Assembly: GCF_020745735.1 (NCBI RefSeq)
Contig: NC_083428.1
Span: 25,854,001-25,918,000 of the forward strand
DNA: 64,000 nt
DNA from: Hemiscyllium ocellatum
Lineage: Eukaryota
Direction of reading: 5' to 3'
Below are positions 3,621 through 64,000 of the stretch, one piece after another (within the stretch, counting starts at the first letter, position 1; each line of letters begins with the position of its first letter). The notes beneath the pieces are model-generated. The model worked only from the letters and a program-made list of their open reading frames with translations, searched no databases and was not told the origin of the DNA. A program made the translations under genes and the position numbers.

Positions 3621-5178
3621 ACCATAAGAGCATAGACCATAAGAAATGGGAGTGGAAATAAGGCGATTTGGCCCATTGAATCCACTCTGCCTTACAATCA
3701 TGGCTGATGGGCATTTCAACGCCACTTACCTGCATTCTCCCCGTATCCCTTAATTCCTTGCGAGATCAAGAATTTATCAATCTCTGCCTTGAAGACATTT
3801 ATCGTCCCAGCTTCCACTGCGCTCCATGGCAATGAATTCCAGAGGCCCACTACTTTCTGGCTAAAGAAATGTCTCCTCATCGCTGTTCTAAATTGACCCT
3901 CTTTAATTCTAAGGCTATGTCCACGAGTCCTAGTATCCCCGCCTTTTGGAGACAATTTCCCAGTGTCCACCTTTTCTAAGCCATGAATTGTCTTGTAAGT
4001 TTCTATTAGATGTCTCCTCAATCTTCTAAACTCTAAAGAATATAATCCGAGGATCCTCAGCCGTTCATCATTTCAGGAATCATCCGTGTGAATCTCTGCT
4101 GGATATGCTACAGTGCCAATATGTCCTTCCTGAGGTGTGGGGTCCAAAACTAACACAGTATTCTAAATGGGGCCTAACCAAAGCTTTATAAAGTGTCATT
4201 GCACATCACTGATTTTACATTCGGACCCTCTTGAGATAAATGACAACATTACATTTGCTTTCTTAACCATGGACTCAATCTGTAAGTCAATCTTTAGAGA
4301 ATCCTGTACTAGCACTCAGAGACCCTTTGTACTTTGGCTTCATGAATTTTCTCACCATTTAAAAAATAGCCCATGCCTGTATTCTTTTTTTCCAAAGTGC
4401 AAGACATTTGCTCACATTGAAGTTCATCAGCCATTACTTGGACACTCTCCTAAACTATCCAAATCTTTCTGCAGCCTCCCCACCTCCTCAGAACTACCTG
4501 CCTGTCCACCTAACTTCGTAAGATCGGTGACTTTGCCAGAATGCCCCCAGTCCCTCCATCCAGATCATTAATATATAAAGTGAACAGCTGCGGCCCCAAC
4601 ACTGAACCCTGTGGGACACCACTTGTCACTAGCTGCCATTCTGAAAAAGAACCTTTTATCCCAACTCTCTGCCTTCTATCAAAAAGCCAATCCCTAATCC
4701 ATGCCAGTAGCTCACCTCGAACACCATGGGCCCTCATCTTACTCAGCAGCCTCCTGTGAGGCACCTTATCAAAGGCTTTTTGAAAGTCTAGGTAGATAAC
4801 ATCCACTGGGTTTCCCTGGTCTAACCTACTTGTTACCTCTTCAAAGAACTCTAACAGATTTGTCAGGCATGACCTCCCCTTACTAAATCCATGCTGACTT
4901 GTTCTAATCCGACCCAGCACTTGCAAGAATTTAGAAATCGCATCCTTAATGATGGATTCTAGAATTTTACCTACAATCGAGGTTGGCCTAACCGACCAAT
5001 AATTTTCCATCTTTTGTCTTGATCTTTCTTGAACAAGAGTGTTCCAATCATCTGGGACTTTTATTGACTCCAATGATTTTTGTAAGATTACAACCAATGC
5101 CTCTGCTATTTCTTCAGCCATTTCCCTCAGAACTCTAGGAAGTAGCCCATTGGGGCCAGGAGATTTATCAATTTTTAG
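3621..5178 (-). mobile_element. 5'-truncated CR1 LINE (RT region to 3' tail)
   Basis: ORFs 4510..5121 (QHGF, YLDFQKAFDKVPH, SGVPQGSVLGP) and 3716..4021; accataag-type tail repeats. Confidence 0.95.
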
Positions 5179-10305: not shown

Positions 10306-11074
10306 CTAAAAATATCTCACAGTGTTGCTTTCTGAGGCAAACTGGAAGCAATATTTAAAGGGAAGCCCACATACAAGATTATTGAATCATGAGTATTAAT
10401 GAGTTATTTACCATATGAGATTTGGAACACCTCGATTGTGTCTATCTTAGTTTTTAATTACCCTGTCATAATTTATCACAGATCTTATTTTAAGTACTTT
10501 GATTTAGTCCGAGGAACAGATGATGGATTGGGAACAGCTACAGTAATGGCATCAGTTGTACTGAGGGCCAAGGTTTTGCAGTCCAGACAATTCAGGAGCA
10601 ATTCAAAAAGGGCAGGCCAGATCAATTTCTGGGATTCCTACTCCCATTTCCAGGGCTGACAATTTTCACTAGTTTGGGATACGATGAAAGCAGTGAGCCC
10701 ACACCATACACTCCTGAGCTGGTTGACCCCAGTGCAAGAGTAGGCATCTTCTAGCCTCATGCAATTTTCATGAAGTTAGCTTAACTTCTCTGTAACTGGT
10801 TCACAGACATTCAGGTGAATTGTGAACTATAGTTTGAATTGGGGAACCATTTGAAAAATATGTTTAAAAAGTGCCCTCCGCATACCCAACCCCCATCCAA
10901 CCACTCCCATTAATTTCTCATACATTCCATGTCAACTCAATGGCCACTCATGCCTCCCAACCACTCCTTTTGTTCTTCATAATCAGCATATCACTCAATA
11001 TCAACTCATACCCATTCACCCACTATGCAATATTGTAGAAAAAAATGAGCTGTAAAATAACAATAGCACATGTA

Positions 11075-14035
11075 AAGCCCATATCCCTCCAGACCCTTCC
11101 TATTCATATACCCATCCAAATGCCTCTTAAATGTTGCAATTGTACCAGCCTGCATCATTTCCTCTGGCACCTCATTCCATACATGTACAACCCTCTGCAT
11201 GAAAAAGTTGCCCCTCAGGTCTGTTTTATATTTTTCCCCTTTCACCCTAAACCTATGCCCTCTAGTTCTGGACTCCCTGACCCCAGGGAAAAGACTTTGT
11301 CTATTTATCCTATCCATGTCCCTCATGATTTTGTAAACCTCTGTAAGGTCACCCCTCAACCTCTGACGGTCCAGGCAAAACAGCCCCAGCCTGTTCAGCC
11401 TCTCCCTGTAGCTCAAATTCTCTAACCCTGGCAACATTCTTGTAAATCTTTTCTGAACCCTTTCAAATTTCACAACATCTTTCCAATTGGAAGGAGACCA
11501 GAATTGCACACAATATTTCAACAGTAGCCTAATCAATGTCCTGTAGAGCTGCAACATGACTTCCCAACTCCTGTACTCAATACTCTGACCAATAAAAGAA
11601 AGCATTCCAATCACCTTCTTCACTATCATATCTATCTGTGACTCCACTTTCAAGGAGCTATGATTTTCTTTCCCAAAATGCAGCACCTCGCATTTATCTG
11701 AATTAAACTCCATCTGCCACTTCTTTGCCCATTGTCCAATCTGGTCAAGATCCTGTTGTAATCTCAGGTAATCTTCTTCGCTGTCCACTACACCTCCAAT
11801 TTTGGTGTCATCTGCAAACTTACTAACTGTACCTCTTATGCTCACATCCAAATCAATTATGTAAATGACAAAAAGTAGCGGACCCAGCACCGATCTTTGT
11901 GGCACTCCATTGGTTACAGGCCTCCAGTCTGAAAAACAACCCTCCACCACAACCTTCTGTCTTCTACCTTTGAGCCAGTTCTGTATCCAGATGGCTAGTT
12001 CTCCCTGTATTCCACGAGATCTAACCTTGGTAACCAGTCTCTCATGGGGAAACTTTTTGAATGTTTTACTGAAGTCCATATAGATCACATCTACTACTCT
12101 GCCCTCATCAATCCTCTTTGTTACTTCTTCAAAAAAGTCAAACAACTTTGTGAGATATGATTTCCCATGCACAAAGCCATGTTGACTATCCCTAATCACT
12201 CCTTGCCTGTCCAAATACATGTATATCCTGTCCCTTAGGATTCCCTCCAACAACTTGCCCACCACCGACGTCAGGCTGCTCATTGGTCTATAGTTCCCTG
12301 GCTTGTCCTTACCACCCTTCTTAAACAGTGGCACCATGATGTCCAACCTCCAGCCTTCCAGCACCTCACCTGTGACTATCAATGATACAAATATCTCAGC
12401 AAGAGGCCCAGCAATCACTTCTCTAGCTTCCCATGGAGTTCTAGGGTACACCTGATCAGGTCCTGGGGAGTTTTCCACCTTTATGCATTTCAAGACATCC
12501 AGCACTTCCTCCGCTGTAATCTGGATATTTTGAAAGATGTCACCATCTATTTCCCTACAGTCTATATCTTCCGTATCCTTTTTCACAGTAAATACTGATG
12601 CAAACTACTTGTTTAGTATCTCCTCCATTTTCTGCAGCTCCACACAAAGGCGGCCTTGCTGATCTTTGAGGGGCCCTATTCTCTCCCTAGTTACCCCTTT
12701 GTCCTTAATGTATTTGTAAAAACCCTTTGGATTCTCCTTAATTCTATTTGCCAAAGCTATCTCATGTCCCCTTTTTGCGCTTCTGATTTCCCTCTTAAGT
12801 ATACTCCTACTGCCTTTCTACTCTTCCAAGCATTCACTCGATCTATCCTGTCTATACGTTACATATGCTTCCCTCTTTTTATTAACCAAACCCTCAATTT
12901 CTTTAGTCATCCAGCATTCCCTATACCTACCAGCCTTCCCTTTCACCCTAACAGGAATATACTTTCTCTTGATTCTCGTTATCTCATTCCTGAAGACTTC
13001 CCATTTTCCAGCTGTCCCTTTACCTGCGAATATCTGCCCCCAATCAGCTTTTGAAAGTTCTTGCCTAATACTATCAAAATTAGCCTTTCTCCAATTTAGA
13101 AATTCAACTTTCAGATAGTTTAAATCTAATGGAATTATGGTCGCTGGCCCCAATGTGCTCCCCCACTGATACCTCAGTCACCTGCCCTGCCTTATTTCCC
13201 CAAGAGTAGGTCAAGTTTTGCACCTTCCCTAGTAGGTCCATCCACATGCTGAATCAGAAAATGCTTTCGTACACACCTAACAAGTTCCTCTCTATCTAAA
13301 CCCTTAACACTATGGCAGTCCCAGTCTATGTTTAGAAAGTTAAAATCCCCTACCATAACTAACTTATTATTCTTCCAGATAGCTGAGATCTCCTTACAAG
13401 TTTGTTCCTCAATTTCCCTCTGACTATTAGGGGGGGTCTATAATACAGTCCCAATAAGGTGATCACCCCTTTCTTATTTCTCAGTTCCACCCAAATAACT
13501 TCCCTGGATGTATTTCCAGGAATATCTTCCCTCATCACAGCTGTAATGCTATTCCTTATCAAAAATGCCACTCCCCCTCCTCTCTTGCCTCCCTTTATAT
13601 CCTTCCTGTACCATTTGTAACCTGGAACATTAAGCTGCCAGTCCTGCCCATCCCTGAGCCATGTTTCTGTAATTGCTATGATATCCCAGTCCCATGGTTT
13701 TAACCATGCCGTGAGTTCATCTGCTTTCCCCGTTAGGTCCCTTGCATTGAAATGAATGCAGTTTAATATATTAGTCTTACCTTGTCCCTGCCTGCCCTGA
13801 CTGTTTGACTCTCTTCTGTTCCCAACTGTACCAGTGTCAGATTGATTTCTTTCCTCACTATCTCCCTGGGTCCCACCAACCCCCCACCATCTCCCCCACC
13901 CCTCCCTCCTCCACCTTACTAGTTTAAATCCTCCCGAGCAGCTCTAGCAAATCTCCCTGACAGTGTATTAATCCCCTTCCAATTTAGGTGCAATTTGTCC
14001 TTCTTGTACAGATCACTTCTACCCCAAAAGAGATT
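11075..14035 (-). mobile_element. CR1 (HER1-like) LINE, APE endonuclease + RT, frameshifted
   Basis: 526-aa ORF 11006..12586 carries RT motifs (QHGF, YMDFSK, GVPQRSVLGP, KFADDTK). Endonuclease fragments lie upstream (13359..13571 WVELRNKKG...LYYRPP; 12818..13153). Confidence 0.95.
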
Positions 14036-42139: not shown

Positions 42140-44633
42140 CCAGACCTCCCCCTCTCTGAGGATGAAAGATCAGTCCTCAGCAGAGGCCTCACCTTCATCC
42201 CCCTACGCTCCCGGTATAACAAGTTCAACACGCGACAAGACATCGAACAATTCTTCCACCGCCTTCGCCTCCGCCCTACTTCTTCAACCAGCATTCTCGC
42301 CCACCCTCTGACAACCCCTTCTCCCGCCTCCAACACTACCAACCACCTGGACACCTCATGCTGGCCTCTTACCCGCCCTCGATCTCTTCACAGCCAACTG
42401 CCACCTCAACCTGTCCACCCCTCTTACCCACTCCAACCTCGCACCCTTTCAATGTGCAGCCCGCCACTCTCTCCGTTCCAACCCCAGCCTCGCTATCAAA
42501 CTGGCAGACAAGGGAGGTGCGGTGGTAGTTTGGCGCACCAATTTTTACATTGCTGAGGCTAAACGCCAGCTCGCGGACACCTCCTCCTACTGCGCCTGTG
42601 ACCATGACCTCACCTCTCACCACCAAACCATCATCTCCCAGACCATCCATAACTTCATCACCTCAGGGGATCTCCCATCCTCCACCTCCAACCGTATAGT
42701 CCCACAACCCCGCACCACCCGTTTCTACCTCCTGCCCAAAATCCACAAACCTGACTGCCCCGGCCGACCCATTGTCTCAGCCTGCTTCTGCCCTACCAAA
42801 CTCATCTTTGCATACCTCGACACGGTCCTGTCCCCCTTAGTCTAAGAACTCCCCACCTACGTTTGGGACACCACTCATGCCCGTCACCTCCTTCATGATT
42901 TTCGCTTCCCCAGCCCCCAATGCCTTATCTTCACCATCGACATCCAGTCCCTATACACCTCCATCCCCCATCACAAAGGCCTCAAAGCCCTCCACTTCCT
43001 CCTTTCCCGCTGACCCAACCAGTACCCTTCCACTGACACCTTCCTTTGACTGATTGAACTGGTCCTCACTTTGAACAACTTCTCTTTCCAATCCTCCCAC
43101 TTCCTCAAACCAAAGGAGTAGCCATGGGCACCCGCATGGGCCCCAGCTTTGCCTGCCTCTTCGTTGGATATGTGGAACAGTCCATCTTCCGCAGCTACAC
43201 TGGCACCAACCCCCACCTTTTCCTCCGCTACATCGATAACTGTATCGGCGCTACCTCCATCTCCCATGAGGAGATTGAACAGTTCATCCACTTTACTAAC
43301 ACCTTCTACCCTGACCTCAAATTTACCTGGACCGTCTCAGATTCCTCCCTCCCCTTCCTAGACCTCTCCATTTCTATCTCGGGTGACCGACTCAACATGG
43401 GCATTTACTATAAATCAACCGACTCCCATAGCTATCTAGATTACACCTCCTCCCATCCTACCCCCTGTAAAAACGCCATCCCATATTCCCAATTCCTTCG
43501 CCTCAGCCACATCTGCTCCCAGGAGGACCAATTCCAATACCGAACAACCCAGATAGCCTCCTTCTTCAAAGACTGCAATTTCCCCTCAGACATGGTTGAC
43601 GATGCTCTCCACCGCATCTCCTCCACTTCCCGCTCCTCCGCCCTTGAACACCGCCCCTCCGATCGCCACCAAGACAGAACCCCACTGGTTCTCACCTACC
43701 ACCCCACCAACCTCCAGATACATCGTATCATCCTTCGTCATTTCCGCCACCTCCAAACAGACCCCATCACCAAGTATATATTTCCATCCCCTCCCCTATC
43801 AGCATTCCGGAAAGACCGCTCCCTCCGTGACTCCCTCGTCAGGTCCACACCCCCACAAACCCAACCTCCACTCCCGGCACCTTCCCCTGCAACCGCAAGA
43901 AATGCAAAACATGCCCCCATACCTCCCCCCTCACTTCCCTCCAAGGCCCCAAGGGATCCTTCCATATCCATCACAAATTCACCTGCACCTCCACACACAT
44001 CATTTACTGCATCCGCTGCACCCGATGTGGCCTCCTCTACATTGGGGAGACGGGCCGCCTACTTGTGGAATGTTTCAGAGAACACCTCTGGGACACCCGC
44101 ACCAACCAACCCAACCGCTCCATGCTAAACACTTTAATTCCCCCTCCCACTCCGCCAAGGACATGCAGGTCCTTGGCCACCTCCATCGCCAGACCATAGC
44201 AACATGATGCCTGGAGGAAGAGCACCTCATCTTCCGCCTAGGAACCCTCCAATCACAAGGGATGAATGCAGATTTCGCCAGCTTCCTTATTTCCCCTCCC
44301 CTCGAACTTATCACAGTCCCAACCCTCGGACTCAGCACTGCCTTCTTGACTTGCAATCCTCTTCCCGACCTCTCCGCCCCCACCCCCACTCTGGCCTATC
44401 ACCCTCACCTTAACCTCCTTTCACCGATCGCATTCCCAACGCTCCTCCCCCAAATCCCTCCTCCCTACCTTTTATCTTAGCCTGCTTGGCATACCTTCCT
44501 CATTCCTGAAGAAGGGCTTATGCCCGAAACGTCGATTCTCCTGCTCCTTGGATGCTGCCTGACTTGCTGCGCTTTTCCAGCAACACATTTTTCAGCTCTG
44601 ATCACCAGTATCTGCAGTCCTCACTTTCTCCTA
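42140..44633 (+). mobile_element. Penelope-like retroelement (Neptune-type), 5'-truncated and defective: RT + Cys-rich linker + GIY-YIG + terminal repeat
   Basis: FYLLPKIHK..GRPIVS, MGTRMGPSFA, FLRYIDN (decayed YIDD), LPFLDL, CNRKKCKTC, IYCIRCTRCGLLYIGETGR. Flanked by an ~18-bp direct repeat. Confidence 0.95.
44502..44537 (+). ncRNA. Minimal type I hammerhead ribozyme motif in the PLE terminal repeat, intact core
   Basis: attc-CTGAAGA-a-gggc(ttat)gccc-GAAA-CGTC-gatt; located in a Penelope terminal repeat, where such ribozymes are known to occur. Confidence 0.8.
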
Positions 44634-46552: not shown

Positions 46553-47959
46553 TTTCTTAAACTCTTGGAAGTGCGGGGTCAGATTAGAACAAGTCAGCAT
46601 GGATTTAGTAAGGGGAGGTCGTGCCTGACAAACCTGTTAGAATTCTTTGAAGAGGTAACAAGTAGGTTAGACCAGGGAAACCCAGTGGATGTTATCTACC
46701 TAGACTTCCAAAAGGCCTTTGATAAGATGCCTCAGAGGAGGCTGCTGAGTAAGGTGAGGGCCCAAGGTGTTCGAGGTGAGCTACTGGCATGGATTGGGGA
46801 TTGGCTTTCTGACAGAAGGCAGAGAGTTGGGATAAAAGGTTCTTTTTCAGAATGGCAGCTAGTGACAAATGGTGTCCCACAGGGTTCAGTGTTGGGGCCG
46901 CAGCTGTTCACTTTAAATATTAATGATCTGGACGAAGGGACTGGGGGCATTCTGGCAAAGTTCACCGATGATACGAAGCTAGGTGGACAGGCAGGTAGTA
47001 CTGAGGAGGTGGGGAGGCTGCAGAAAGATTTGGATAGTTTGGGAGAGTGGTCCAGGAAATGGCTGATGAAATTCAACGTGAGCAAGTGTGAGGTCTTGCA
47101 CTTGGGAAAAAAGAATACAGGCATGGGCTATTTTTTAAATGATGAGAAAATTCATAAAGCCAAAATACAAAGGGATCTGGAAGTACTACGCCATGATTCT
47201 CTAAAGGTTGATTTGCAGGTTCAGTCCGTGATTAAGAAAGCAAATGTAATGTTGTCATTTACTCAAGAAGGTTGGAATATAAAAGCAGTGATGTGATACT
47301 GAGAATTTCTAAAGCTCTAGTTAGGCCCCATTTAGAATACTGTGTCCAGTGTTGGGTCCCACACTTAAGTAAGGACATACTGGTACTGGAGCGTGCCAGC
47401 GGAGATTCACACGGATGATCTCTGGAATGGTAGGCCTAACATATAATGATGGGCTGAGGATCCTAGGATTGTATTTGTTAGTGTTTAGAAGGTTGAGGGG
47501 AGATCTAATAGAAACTTACAAGATAATGTATGGCTTAGAAAAGGTGGACGCTGGGAAGTTATTTCTGTTAGGCGGGGAGACTAGGACCCTTGGGTATAGC
47601 CTTAAAATTAGAGGGGGTCAGTTTAGAACAGAAATGAGCAGACATTTCTTCAGCCAGAGAGTGGTGGGCCTGTGGAATTCATCGCTATGGAGCACAGTGG
47701 AGGCCGGGACGTTGGGTGTCTTCAAGGCAGAGATTGATGTAGTCTTGATCTCGCAAAGATTTAAGGGCTATGGGGAGAGTGCAAGTAAGTGGAATTGAAA
47801 CACCATCAGCCATGATTAAATGGCGGAGTGGACTCGATGGGCTGAATGGCCTTGCTTCCACTCCTAAGTCTTATGGTCTTTTAGTCTGGACTATGTCCAA
47901 TGCCAGTATATGCTTTCTTAGGTTAAGGACCCAAACCTATTCACTGTGTCCCAGCACTT

Positions 47960-50811: not shown

Positions 50812-52140
50812 TCATAGTGTCATAGAGTCATACAACGCAGAAAAGGCCCTTCAGCTCATCGTGTCTCATAATAACTACACTAAAGGTGTGCTAATCCCAG
50901 TTTCTTGCACTTGTCCCACATCCTTCAATGCTATGATATTGCAACTGCTTGTCAATGTATTTTGTGAAGGTTGTAAAGTATCCGGTCTCCACTAGCTTCC
51001 CAGGCAGTGCATTCCCAGGTTCCCACCATCCAACGAGTGAAAAAGTATTTTTCCAAATCCCTCCTGAATCTCCTGCCTGTTACTCTGAAACTATGCCTCC
51101 TCATGATTGACCCCTCAACCAAGGGGAACAGCTGATCCCTACTCACCTTATCCCTGCCCCTCATAATCTGTGATGCCTCAATCATGTTTCCCCTCAGTTT
51201 TCTCTGTTCTGAAGAAAACAATCCAAGTCTATCTAGCCTTTCCTTATAGTTCAACTGCACCAACTCAGGAAATATCTTGGTGAACCTCCTCTGTATCCCT
51301 TCTAGTGATATTACATCCGTCTTGCAATGAAGTGACCAGAACTGCACATAGTACACCAGTTGTGGCCCAACCAACACCCTGTACAACTCCAACATTACCT
51401 CCTTGCTGTTATACTCTATGCCACAACTGATGAAAACAAATGTCCCATATGCCTTTTTAACTATCCTATTCATGTGTTCTTCCAACTTCAGGGATCTGTG
51501 AATAATTACCCCAAGATCCCTCTAAGCTTCCCAATTTCCTGCCTTTCATTAAATATTCCCTCATCATGGTTTTTCTTCCAAAGTTCATCACCTTGGACTT
51601 ACCAAGGTTAAATACGAAATGGTACTGCTCTGCCCATCTGAGCAACTCATTGAGATCTTCCTGTAACCTACAACAATGTTAGTTACTATTAACCACCCTA
51701 TCAACCTTGGCATTGTATGCAAACTTGCTAACTAATCCTTAATCTTGTCATCTATATAATTTCTGTATGTAACAAACAATAAGGGTCCCAGTACTGACCT
51801 TTGTGGTACACTACTGGACACCAGCCTCTAGTCACTCAGACAGCCTTCTACTATTACACATTGTGTCCTATTATGATGCGAGTTTCTGATACATTTCATC
51901 AAGCCTCCCTCAATTCCATGTGCTTTAACCTTCTCAATCAGCCTCTCATGTGGGATCTTGTCGGAAGCTTTGCTAAAATCTGTATAAACTACATCAGCTG
52001 AATTTCGCTCACCTACACACTTGATCACATTTCAAACAAATTTCTTAGGCATGACTTCTCTCTGTCAATGCCATGCTGACTGCCTTTAATTGATCCAATC
52101 TTTTCCAAGTGGATAATAATTCTCTCCTTCACCACGGAGA
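50812..52140 (-). mobile_element. CR1 LINE fragment
   Basis: ORFs 50952..51485 and 51828..52028 (DVVYTDFSKASDKIPH). Confidence 0.9.
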
Positions 52141-56181: not shown

Positions 56182-56251
56182 ATGTTCTGCAAAACGTTTT
56201 GTTCGAAGTCATTGTTATGGAGTATTTTAATTTTGGGGATTTATCTCTCAG
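56182..56251 (+). CDS. Exon 1 (signal peptide) of a secreted or surface mucin-like protein
   Basis: Translates to MFCKTFCSKSLLWSILILGIYLS plus 1 nt (basic N-terminus, hydrophobic core). It ends in a strong donor CAG|GTAAGA. The phase-1 junction splices in frame to the acceptor at 61447/61448, giving ...IYLSDSSA-KTTK with a plausible signal peptidase site. Confidence 0.75.
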
Positions 56252-56625
56252 GTAAGAAAAGTATCCATTTATTTATTGCCCACATGCTCTGGATTGGTTT
56301 CCAGAATATGCAGTATGTTACTTAAATTTAAAATGCAAATTGAAGGTACTTAGAATGTTATCCTTAGAATTTGTTTTCTTTGGTGTAACTTACATGAGAA
56401 CGTTTGCTTTTAACAACAGAAACAAAGTTATTCCTGAGAAATTATTTTTGAGATGCAAAGGATTAAACTTCAAAATTGCTAATTACAATGTCATTTATCT
56501 GACAACATCTGTATCAGTATCCACGTTCAATAATATCATAGAAATAAGTGAACGAAATGATTCAACAATGGATTTGTTGAATTTAAGATAAAAATTCAAA
56601 GTAGCTTAACATGAACTGACATGCA

Positions 56626-60385: not shown

Positions 60386-61447
60386 ACAAAGTTACTCTCT
60401 TTCAATTTAAAAGTTGTAGTCTATATTGTTCTTTGCTTGTTTCCACTTCTGATCTAACTCTTCAGGTCTAATGTTCACTCTTATCGAAGTGGAATTCAGT
60501 CTACCTCATTTCTCAACCCCTGATCCAGGCAATGCCTCCTTCCTCTTTGCTGGTCAAGAATTTCTCTCAAATGGTCAGAAGTCTATCTTCTCTTTGGCCT
60601 TTTCATTTGATATTTGGGTAATTGAAGTATCCAATATCACCATTTTATAGTTATTGAATAACTCTGTGATTTACCTGGTGGTTTGTTTTGGTAAATATCC
60701 TTGTCAATATTTGGAGATCTTATAGAATTTCCCAGTTGTATTTCACTTCCCAACTCTAAGCAAACAATTTATGAAAAATGAAAAGAATGCAGTACTGTGG
60801 AGAAGTGCAGGAGGTGAAACTAATTGATTGTTTTTTTGAACATCAGGCACAGGCACAATGATGCTTTTATTTAGAACAATGTTAGAAGTCTTGATTTGAA
60901 CTGCCCTTGCATTATCCTGCTTATCTCAGTGTAGCACACCTCTTCCAACAGCTGGCCAGAGCCTCAGTCACACAGATTAGCCCTCTTACCTGTGGAGTCT
61001 GACTGTTATCCTGAATTTGAAAAGAGGTAGCAGAAGTTAATTAGTGGTCCTAGACCAATTAACAAGCCCCTTTGGTGAAAATATCAAAAGTGGATAGGTA
61101 TTAGCAGGATTCAGGACCCTCATTTGATTCCAACATCTGAATCCCTTCCTGAAACTGTCGGCACATATTTCTGCTGTATGGAGGTGGCACTTGGGTAACA
61201 AATAAGATACAATTTTCAAAAACGAACATCATAAAATAGAGCTGCAGAGCATCATTGAATATGATTATCAAAAATAACAAGAAAACCTGACAAGATCAGG
61301 AACATACTGCAGATGAATATTTGACCAATCCCAGCACTACAACGATGTCAAACCTGCCTAACACTGAAAAACAGCTTTTCAAGGCAATAAGGTTTACGTT
61401 TTTAATCACAGAGTATTTTTAACCTTTTATTAATATTGTTTCTACAG

Positions 61448-64000
61448 ATTCCAGTGCAAAAACGACAAAACCAAAAGGAATAAATTCAAGAAGTATTCCA
61501 AAACCAACAGAAAGACTTTCAGGAAATATTCAAATGCCAAATATCATGAAAATAAATCCCACAAATGTTTCAGCTATATTAATGGTTGAGACATCTTTCA
61601 CAGATACACTAAAATCAGATGTGAAGGAAAACATGGCCAGAGGTTTGCAAAACAATGAAAAAAACAGGAAAAGGAAAGGAAAACATATTGCATGCAAACA
61701 CAGATTACATGGCAAGAACATACATTCAACTGATGATCACACACTAAAAGAAAGTCAAAATTATTCAACTAAAAAGGCAAACGTAAAAGAGGAGAAAACA
61801 AGTTCAACAAGGTTGTTTACAGTTAAACAAAAAGACAACAATCTGTCAAGTAAGCCACAACCAAACTTGAAACAATCATCCTCAGCAAATACTCTACCAA
61901 CAAAAATAATGGAGACATCCTCAACAAATACTCCAACATCAAAACTAATGGAAACATTCTCGACAGCTACTCAAACACTGAAAATGAAGCAAAATATTCC
62001 AACGTCAAAACTGGTGGAATCATCTTCGACAAATACTCCAACACCAAAAATAATGAAAACATCATTGACCAATACTCTTACACCAAAATGGATGGAAACA
62101 TCATTAACCAATACTCCAAAAATGGTGGAATCATCCACAATAAATACTCCAACTCCAAAACTGGTGCAAACATCCTCAACAAATACTCCAACACCAAAAA
62201 TAATGGAAACATCCACAAAAAATTCTCCAACACCAAAAATAATGGAAACATCATTGATCAATACTCCAACATCAAAACTGGTGGAAAAATCATCGACTAA
62301 TACTCCAAAAATGGTGGAATCATCCACGACGAATATTCTAACACCAAAAGTAAAGGAAACATCATCAACCAAGACTTCAACATCAAAAATAATTGAAGCA
62401 ACCTCATCAAATACTCTATGGCCAAAAACAGTAGAATTATTCTCAACAAAGACTCCAACAACAAACTTAATAGAAACAATCTCAACTAATTCTCCAACTC
62501 AGAGAGTAATAGAGTCTTCATCAACAGAAGCTCCAACAGCAAAATTGGCAGAAAATCCATTGAAAAATTCCCCAACAACAAAAGGAAATGGAAATCGAAA
62601 AGGTAAAATTACACGATGTAAAGGCGTACATGGAAAAAATACACAAGCTGTAAAGGCTTCAACAATAAGTGTAAAATTGGACAGATCACCGTTAAACTCA
62701 CCAACACCAAAATGGGCAGAATCATCCTCAACAAACTCTCCAATATTGAAAATGATGGAAACGACCACAACACATACTCTAATACCAGAAATGGTGAAAT
62801 CATCCTCAATGAATAATCCACCATTAAGTGTGGCGAAAACATCTTCAAAAAATACTTTAACACCAAAATTGATGGAAATGTCCTCAACAAATACTCCAAC
62901 ATCAAAACTAATAGAAATATCCACGACACCAAAAATGATGGAATCAATCTTGTCAATTACTCCAACACCAGAAATGGTGAAATCATCCTCAAAAAATTCT
63001 CCAACGTCAAAAGTATTGGAAGAAATCCCAACAAAAACTTCAATACCAAAAGTGGTGGAACCATTCTCAACAAATACTCCAACATCAGGAGTGTTGGAAA
63101 CATCTTTGACAACTACTCAAACACTGAATATAATGAAATCATCTTCAAAAAATACTCCAAGACCAAAAATCATGGAATCATCCTCCACAAGGACTCCAAT
63201 GTTGAAAATGATGGAATCATCAACCACAAATACTCTAACACCAAAATTTGTGGAAACATCCCAAACAAATACCGCAACACCAAAAATGGTGGAAAGATCC
63301 ACAATAAATATTCCAACACCAAACATGGTACAGACATCCACAATAAATACTCCAACACCGCAAATGGTGGAATCATCCACGACAAATACTCCAACTCTGA
63401 AAATGAAGGAAACATCATCAACCAATACTCCAACAAAAATAATTGAAGCATCCTCGACAACTACTCTAAGGCCAAAAACTGTAGCATTATTCCCAACAAA
63501 GACTTCAACAACAAACATAATAGAAACATCCTCAACTAATTCTCCAACCCAGAGAGTAATAGAGTTATCTTCAACAAAATCTCCAACAACAAAATTGGCA
63601 GAAAATCCATCGAAAAATACCATGACAACAAAAGGAAATGGAAATCGAAAAGGAAAACCTACTCAGTGTAAAGGTGTACATGGAAAACCTGTAAAACCTA
63701 CAAAGGTAGCAACAACACGAGTTATGTTGGACAGATCTCTGTCATATTCACCAACGCCAAAATGGGCAGAATCATCCTCAACAAATTCTCCAATATTGAA
63801 AATGCTGGAAACAACCAAAACATATACTCCAACACCAGAAATGGTAGAAACATTCACAACAAATACTCCAACATCGAAAGTTGTGGAAACATCCTCAACA
63901 AGCACTCCAACACCAGAAATGGTGGAATCATCCTCAACAAATACTCCTACATTGAGAGTGGTGGAAATATCTTCAACAAATACTCTAACATCAAAAGTGG
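61448..64000 (+). CDS. Large exon of a Ser/Thr/Pro-rich tandem-repeat (mucin/proteoglycan-like) protein; runs off the window end
   Basis: Acceptor ttattaatattgtttctacAG. I read frame +1 codon by codon from 61450 to 63999 and found no stop (850 codons): SSAKTTKPKGINSRSIPKPTERLSGNIQMPN..., then degenerate 13-aa repeats like TPKMVESSSTNTP. It is absent from the ORF track, probably because no stop is reached inside the window. Confidence 0.88.
61861..64000 (+). repeat. Coding minisatellite, 39-bp unit (about ACACCAAAAATGGTGGAATCATCCTCAACAAATACTCCA), with a ~1050-bp higher-order repeat
   Basis: Dozens of degenerate 39-nt units whose indels are all multiples of 3. The block at ~62308-62790 is echoed at ~63361-63840. 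Confidence 0.9.

Follow-up and report, generated by a model that had tools for sequence, protein, structure and literature searches.

Mucins polymerise through large terminal domains that are rich in disulfides, and at CysD domains along its length the chain has further links, non-covalent ones. CysD, which occurs in the gel-forming mucins MUC2, MUC5AC, and MUC5B and corresponds to the Pfam family Mucin2_WxxW, is a folded domain with a WxxW motif. In the G protein of pneumoviruses, two mucin-like regions lie around a basic, heparin-binding, Cys-bearing centre with a noose of four cysteines. The cysteines of CysD, ten in number, are joined in five intramolecular disulfides, and the domain forms non-covalent dimers (PMC3195396). 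MUC7 is a small secreted mucin, confined to placental mammals and lacking von Willebrand D (VWD) domains, that combines a histatin-like domain with Ser/Thr/Pro-rich (PTS) repeats (PMC4997351); a 12-residue stretch of it, RKSYKCLHKRCR, is a cationic antimicrobial peptide cut from the mucin (PMC2211505). Also, the central exons of MUC2 and MUC6 are built, according to one account (PMC6269512), of short units nested in kilobase superunits that have spread by unequal recombination.

The DNA considered here is a stretch of 64,000 nucleotides (the window) from the shark Hemiscyllium ocellatum (contig NC_083428.1, positions 25,854,001 to 25,918,000), and coordinates are those of the window. At its 3' end it enters what is apparently an unannotated, orphan mucin-like gene, in which PTS arrays are interrupted at intervals by a short basic segment, called the module below, with a single cysteine. 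The features on which the discussion depends are these:

56183 to 56252, + strand: candidate exon 1, with an ATG at 56183, 23 signal-peptide-like codons (MFCKTFCSKSLLWSILILGIYLS) followed by a single further base and, at 56253, a phase-1 GTAAGA donor
61448 to 64000, + strand: putative large mucin-like (PTS) exon, starting in phase 1 after the acceptor AG at 61446-61447 and continuing past the end of the window
61450 to 61629, + strand: apparently decayed 13-mer units 5' of module 1, matching the 39-nt consensus and collinear with the units 5' of module 2
61663 to 61719, + strand: module 1, NRKRKGKHIACKHRLHGKN, Cys codon TGC at 61693
62257 to 62921, + strand: superunit block holding module 2, duplicated at 63304-63971 (offset 1050-1053)
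62581 to 62640, + strand: core of module 2, KGNGNRKGKITRCKGVHGKN, Cys codon TGT at 62617, followed by a variable, Ser/Thr-poorer tail to ~62685
63631 to 63690, + strand: core of module 3, KGNGNRKGKPTQCKGVHGKP, Cys codon TGT at 63667

Translation of the + strand in the frame of the Cys codons gives 859 codons without a stop (61423-64000), among them 170 Thr (20%), 125 Ser (15%), 92 Lys (11%), and 75 Pro (9%). Just three are Cys, with codons at 61693, 62617, and 63667, each inside a motif N-x2-RKGK-x3-CK-x2/3-HGK, and the spacings between them are 924 and 1050 nt. The initial annotation had placed the exon's only cysteines in three related basic motifs at these distances, and it was correct, down to the peptide contexts. 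Half of the eight His in the frame adjoin the three cysteines. The four Trp of the exon stand singly, in PKW[AM]E or LWP contexts, and none is in a module. Over the exon, 850 codons of A-rich DNA contain no stop, as against 71 and 16 stops in the other two forward frames, and a polypyrimidine tract and the AG at 61446-61447 precede the phase-1 start at 61448. The region has what marks a gene as mucin-like, a long Ser/Thr/Pro-rich tandem-repeat region within one large exon. Judged by these features, 61448-64000 appears to open the large central exon of a mucin-like gene, with secretion and glycosylation both predicted from the translation.

Where might the gene begin? A TATA-like box, TATATAAAAGG, can be read ~65 nt 5' of the ATG at 56183, and the leader that follows, MFCKTFCSKSLLWSILILGIYLS, is hydrophobic and 23 residues long, with two Cys in the n-region of the signal-peptide-like ORF. 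The donor at 56253 and the acceptor at 61446-61447 are both in phase 1, with an intron of ~5.2 kb between them, and since the phases fit, the putative signal-peptide exon is probably spliced directly to the large PTS exon. Such a junction leaves no N-terminal von Willebrand D domains: provided that the predicted 56252|61448 splice is right, there is no VWD1-VWD2-VWD'-VWD3 assembly ahead of the PTS region, and the first 316 residues of the exon contain no Pfam domain. Any C-terminal VWC or CK dimerisation domains would lie in the 3' part of the gene, past the end of the window.

The window 5' of the mucin-like gene is mostly retroelement debris, as is evident from several reverse-transcriptase-like ORFs, the longest of 526 amino acids (11006-12586 and 4510-5121 on the - strand, 46565-47296 and 43124-44128 on the + strand, and 50952-51485 on the - strand). 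Pro-rich ORFs occur at 29.5-31.4 kb and 43.6-44.2 kb, within GC-rich stretches of strong negative GC skew.

The large exon is repetitive at two levels. Tandem Repeats Finder reports 44.7 copies of a 39-nt unit with the consensus SSSTNTPTPKMME, and the self-offset spectrum of the sequence has peaks at 39, 78, and then 1050 nt. The block that holds module 2 (62257-62921) and its counterpart (63304-63971) match in a local alignment over 72 nt at 86% identity and 538 nt at 82%, with indels of 6 and 3 nt. The duplicated block is at least 660 nt long, is ~82% identical, and contains copies 2 and 3 of the module; taken unit by unit, identity across it ranges from 0.69 to 0.97. In a global alignment the two inter-module intervals are collinear, and the indels in the well-aligned part (+6, -33, and -3 nt) are all multiples of 3. 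By repeat finder, offset spectrum, and alignments alike, the two-level architecture that had been claimed for the exon is real: 39-nt units are nested in superunits of ~0.9-1.05 kb, each with ~25 thirteen-residue Ser/Thr/Pro units and one module. In having short units nested in kilobase superunits, the shark exon is like the VNTRs of MUC2 and MUC6, but it differs from them in the non-PTS element within every superunit, which is distinct and unrelated in sequence to the short unit.

The exon opens with sequence that seems unique. Three 60-nt pieces of 61450-61629 nevertheless score 32-38 against the 39-nt consensus, each score being equalled by 0 or 1 of 3000 shuffles, and the same region aligns collinearly and without gaps to the five units upstream of module 2. 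Since it still matches the PTS consensus and is collinear with those units, the N-terminus of the exon looks like a decayed first copy of the superunit ("five units plus module") and not a separate N-terminal domain.

The module cores give a different result. Against the 39-nt consensus they score 12-14, at or below the shuffle mean of 14-15, where PTS controls and the N-terminal pieces score 32-42 (the PTS control scoring 42). Since the DNA of the module is unrelated to the 39-nt unit while all its surroundings are related, the module is a separate element, inserted and non-repetitive, rather than a repeat that has decayed. An alignment with gaps to the tandem consensus, in which ATGGAA lies out of frame in KGNGN and HGK, had hinted that the module might be a frame-shifted or decayed 13-mer, a possibility that the core scores rule out.

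Aligned with one another, the three modules agree throughout at ten columns: N, R, K, G, K, C, K, H, G, and K. The back-translated pattern RKGK-x3-CK has three matches on the two strands of the 64-kb window, all in modules, against 0.11 expected. The module has a net charge of ~+8 over 26 residues, of which two are Ser/Thr, compared with ~5 Ser/Thr in each 13-mer. Taken 13 residues at a time, the modules have charges of +5 and +3, or of +4 and +3, with one Ser/Thr in each segment, while the array units are near neutral and have 4-8. The modules are thus as basic and as poor in Ser/Thr, amid an otherwise near-neutral array, as had been claimed, and modules 2 and 3 have 13-mer arrays on both sides. 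Within module 2, the sequence AAG|GTAAAA (62601-62609) looks like a 5' splice site; the corresponding sequence of module 3 is GGAAAA, and the resemblance, which is not conserved, is probably meaningless.

Searches for relatives were made at several levels. Pfam hmmscan, applied to three thirds of the exon with E up to 1, returned no family, and a profile of the three modules compared with PDB sequences found a mitoribosomal protein at E = 0.23 and nothing else. When a 131-residue block was run with phmmer against 1.84 billion representatives, the one match was a bacterial repeat protein, which we judge from its sequence to be spurious. Word-indexed searches with residues 313-450, residues 1-150, and the whole 850 residues found no match among proteins of 467-1487 residues, and a degenerate DNA pattern found none among metagenome contigs. 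An exact look-up of a minus-strand ORF, intended as a way into the flanking DNA, returned no record. AlphaFold2 gave the 131-residue block no secondary structure (pTM 0.14, mean pLDDT 58.9), which is weak evidence, the model having been made from a single sequence. The Pfam, PDB, and AlphaFold2 results dispose of the idea that the module is a known domain. A match of that kind would have counted against the initial annotation; judged by these searches, the module belongs to no known family.

An Atlas search by language-model features returned fragments of the pneumovirus G protein at a score of 0.80, a level attained in a third of cases by shuffled proteins. The two have in common a T/K/P-rich, mucin-like polypeptide broken by a bare, basic, Cys-bearing segment, and the G protein is the nearest match by such features. 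However, at only 0.80 the match is one of composition, and the viral protein has its noose of four cysteines at the centre; we take the likeness for no more than a compositional lead, with no homology implied.

Is the motif constrained? The initial annotation held that RKGK...CK..HGK is kept while the neighbouring 13-mers drift. Copies 2 and 3 do not bear this out. At the nucleotide level their cores are 85% identical and their 45-nt tails 67%, and the flanks stand at 88% upstream and 79% downstream; one 13-mer beside them is 97% identical. On these identities, the similarity of copies 2 and 3 is attributable to a fairly recent duplication. Their pN/pS is 0.37 in the core and 0.90 in the flanks, a difference in the direction of constraint that is not significant (P = 0.16 to 0.28), and with nine core differences a selection test on this pair alone is underpowered.

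The part of the claim that stands is the comparison of copy 1 with the other two. Of the 18 residues compared in the core of copy 1, 11 are identical in copy 2 and 10 in copy 3. Between the cores of copies 1 and 2, synonymous sites are saturated (pS 0.92) while pN is 0.23, and seven of the 11 identical residues use different codons. Their flanks have identities at 12 of 60 codons upstream and 4 of 40 downstream (10-20%), with pN/pS ~1.1-1.2. The binomial probability under neutrality of 10 or fewer nonsynonymous changes in 20, for the two cores, is 0.0026, and the score of copy 1 against copy 2 was equalled by none of 20000 shuffles of the whole N-terminal region and, when only the 30-residue basic segment was shuffled, by 2 in 20000. 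Since copy 1 keeps these residues at saturated synonymous sites while its flanks have decayed, the motif appears to be constrained at the amino-acid level between copy 1 and the other two, as was first supposed. The case is suggestive but thin: it amounts effectively to one independent comparison, there being three copies, two of them a recent duplicate pair, and the motif was picked for looking similar. Because of the saturation, the resemblance of copy 1 to the other two could reflect either common descent or convergence, and the amino-acid pattern looks selected in both cases.

How does such an element compare with CysD, of which it had been proposed to be a minimal analogue? Like CysD, the module is Cys-bearing and not of PTS type, and it recurs as a break in long arrays that carry O-glycans or, in the shark, are predicted to; the cross-links proposed for it would lie along the chain and not at its ends. 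Unlike CysD, it has ~20 residues with one Cys, no WxxW, no match to the Mucin2_WxxW profile or any other in Pfam, and no predicted fold. That is enough to reject the module as a CysD domain, and as an analogy the proposal retains only the position between PTS arrays. Also, unlike the CysD mucins, the shark gene, as predicted, has no room for N-terminal D domains between signal peptide and PTS array. Since CysD links non-covalently and its cysteines are all intramolecular, a disordered module with a single Cys would have to work differently, by way of an intermolecular or inter-module disulfide, or electrostatically.

Exposed unpaired cysteines of secreted proteins are usually oxidised or retained, and nearby Lys or Arg lower the pKa of a thiol. 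Three or more nodes per chain permit the formation of a network. With this in mind, we suggest that the modules are disordered, cationic, single-Cys "sticker" nodes in a secreted mucin-like brush, which they would cross-link through thiol and charge. According to this model, the Ser/Thr/Pro 13-mers would carry O-glycans, and the module, as an intrinsically disordered segment of ~20-26 residues, nearly free of Ser/Thr and with one Cys, one conserved His, and two conserved Gly, would be a bare gap in the glycan brush. The Lys and Arg beside the thiol should favour the thiolate. Since unpaired cysteines in secreted proteins are normally oxidised, the Cys would form a disulfide with another module or with another protein, while the RKGK cluster would hold anionic partners (sulfated or sialylated glycans, glycosaminoglycans, microbial surfaces). 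With at least three nodes per chain, 308-350 residues apart, cross-links in mid-chain could make a network without terminal polymerisation domains. The model is plausible, if somewhat short of probable. Its basis is three copies in one gene of one genome, peptides rich in K/R/G/N arise easily in A/G-rich DNA, and two modules of charge +8 would repel each other in a homotypic disulfide.

Perhaps the module does nothing. A chance non-PTS stretch, copied with the superunit by unequal crossing-over, would be a neutral passenger whose Cys is merely tolerated, and one might think so from the raw identity of copies 2 and 3, which is no higher in the core than in the flanks, from the lack of significance in the pN/pS of core and flanks (P = 0.16 and 0.28), and from the readiness with which purine-rich DNA encodes runs of K/R/G/N. 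A passenger, however, would not be expected to look like copy 1, which has C, H, and both G among the residues it keeps at saturated synonymous divergence, beside flanks of 10-20% identity, or to reach a score that shuffling of the local composition equals in 2 of 20000 trials. Such neutrality seems to us rather unlikely. It is far less probable still, indeed barely credible, that there is no gene here and that the open frame is a by-product of the 39-nt minisatellite, as might be imagined from the failure of any database protein to match in the searches run. The absence of stops from A-rich DNA whose other forward frames have many argues against it, and the non-repeat modules and the decayed N-terminal part are likewise open in this frame. 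The superunit copies differ by in-frame indels, and the polypyrimidine tract and AG are phase-matched to an upstream exon with TATA box, ATG, signal-peptide-like ORF, and GT donor.

Alternatively, the charge of the module may matter more than its thiol. The Cys/His-bearing cationic modules might bind microbes or anionic polymers in host defence, possibly after release by a protease, with the Cys secondary. In this regard the histatin-like domain of MUC7 may be a closer functional analogue than CysD, the likeness being one of character only. Both genes would have a signal-peptide exon and one large PTS exon, encoding a small secreted mucin without VWD domains in which there is a short, K/R/H-rich, Cys-containing, unglycosylated peptide. 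In MUC7, however, the peptide is a single N-terminal copy with two Cys, whereas the shark module is repeated within the array, a single Cys to each copy, and its likeness to RKSYKCLHKRCR is of composition, with no alignable similarity, so that any likeness would be convergent. XBBXBX, the heparin-binding pattern of Cardin and Weintraub, fits all three modules (N-R-K-G-K-I, N-R-K-G-K-P, and K-R-K-G-K-H), a lead and not proof of binding; the net charge of ~+8 and the resemblance to the pneumovirus G protein point the same way as the peptide cut from MUC7. Yet that viral resemblance is of a kind that shuffled proteins often show, and generic binding by charge has no need of invariant Gly, Cys, and His positions. 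Also, the sequence contains no dibasic convertase site common to all three copies: KR is present in copy 1 only, and in copies 2 and 3 RKGK offers no dibasic P2-P1 pair. For this reason proteolysis at the modules, one of the functions originally suggested for them, is not favoured. A defence peptide is on the whole unlikely. A further possibility is that Cys and His coordinate Zn or Cu between chains. Both residues are invariant, spaced as C-x3-H in copies 2 and 3 and as H-x2-C-x-H-x2-H in copy 1, where three His fall within a nine-residue stretch around the Cys, and Cys/His peptides derived from MUC7 have been studied as Cu(II)/Zn(II) ligands, according to two reports (PMC8745124, PMC11962837). 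In copies 2 and 3, however, a module has just a single Cys and a single His, which on their own would make a weak site, and a cross-link through metal is very unlikely.

If the preferred model of cross-linking through thiol and charge is correct, then a disordered peptide of 20 residues would cross-link covalently by a design much simpler than that of known mucin domains, and this design could readily be adopted in engineered mucin mimetics. It would be an example, too, of how a PTS protein that is an "orphan" can gain the ability to form networks without acquiring a folded domain. If the modules serve instead as cationic peptides of defence, the shark would have in them a counterpart of the histatin-like domain of MUC7. 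The model can be put more broadly, as a previously undescribed minimal design for a mucus network, in which a single reactive Cys within cationic, glycan-free gaps every ~300-350 residues provides covalent and electrostatic mid-chain cross-links in a mucin without polymerisation domains of the von Willebrand type. In that broad form it is doubtful. The claim concerns one gene in one genome, and it is a lead, not a result.

The module is not the best-kept part of the duplicated block. Just 3' of modules 2 and 3 lies SPTPKWAESSSTNSPIL (62698-62748 and 63748-63798), the same in both copies. Over its first 13 codons the copies differ twice, both times synonymously, and its single Trp, in PKWAE, recurs as PKWME at ~62080.
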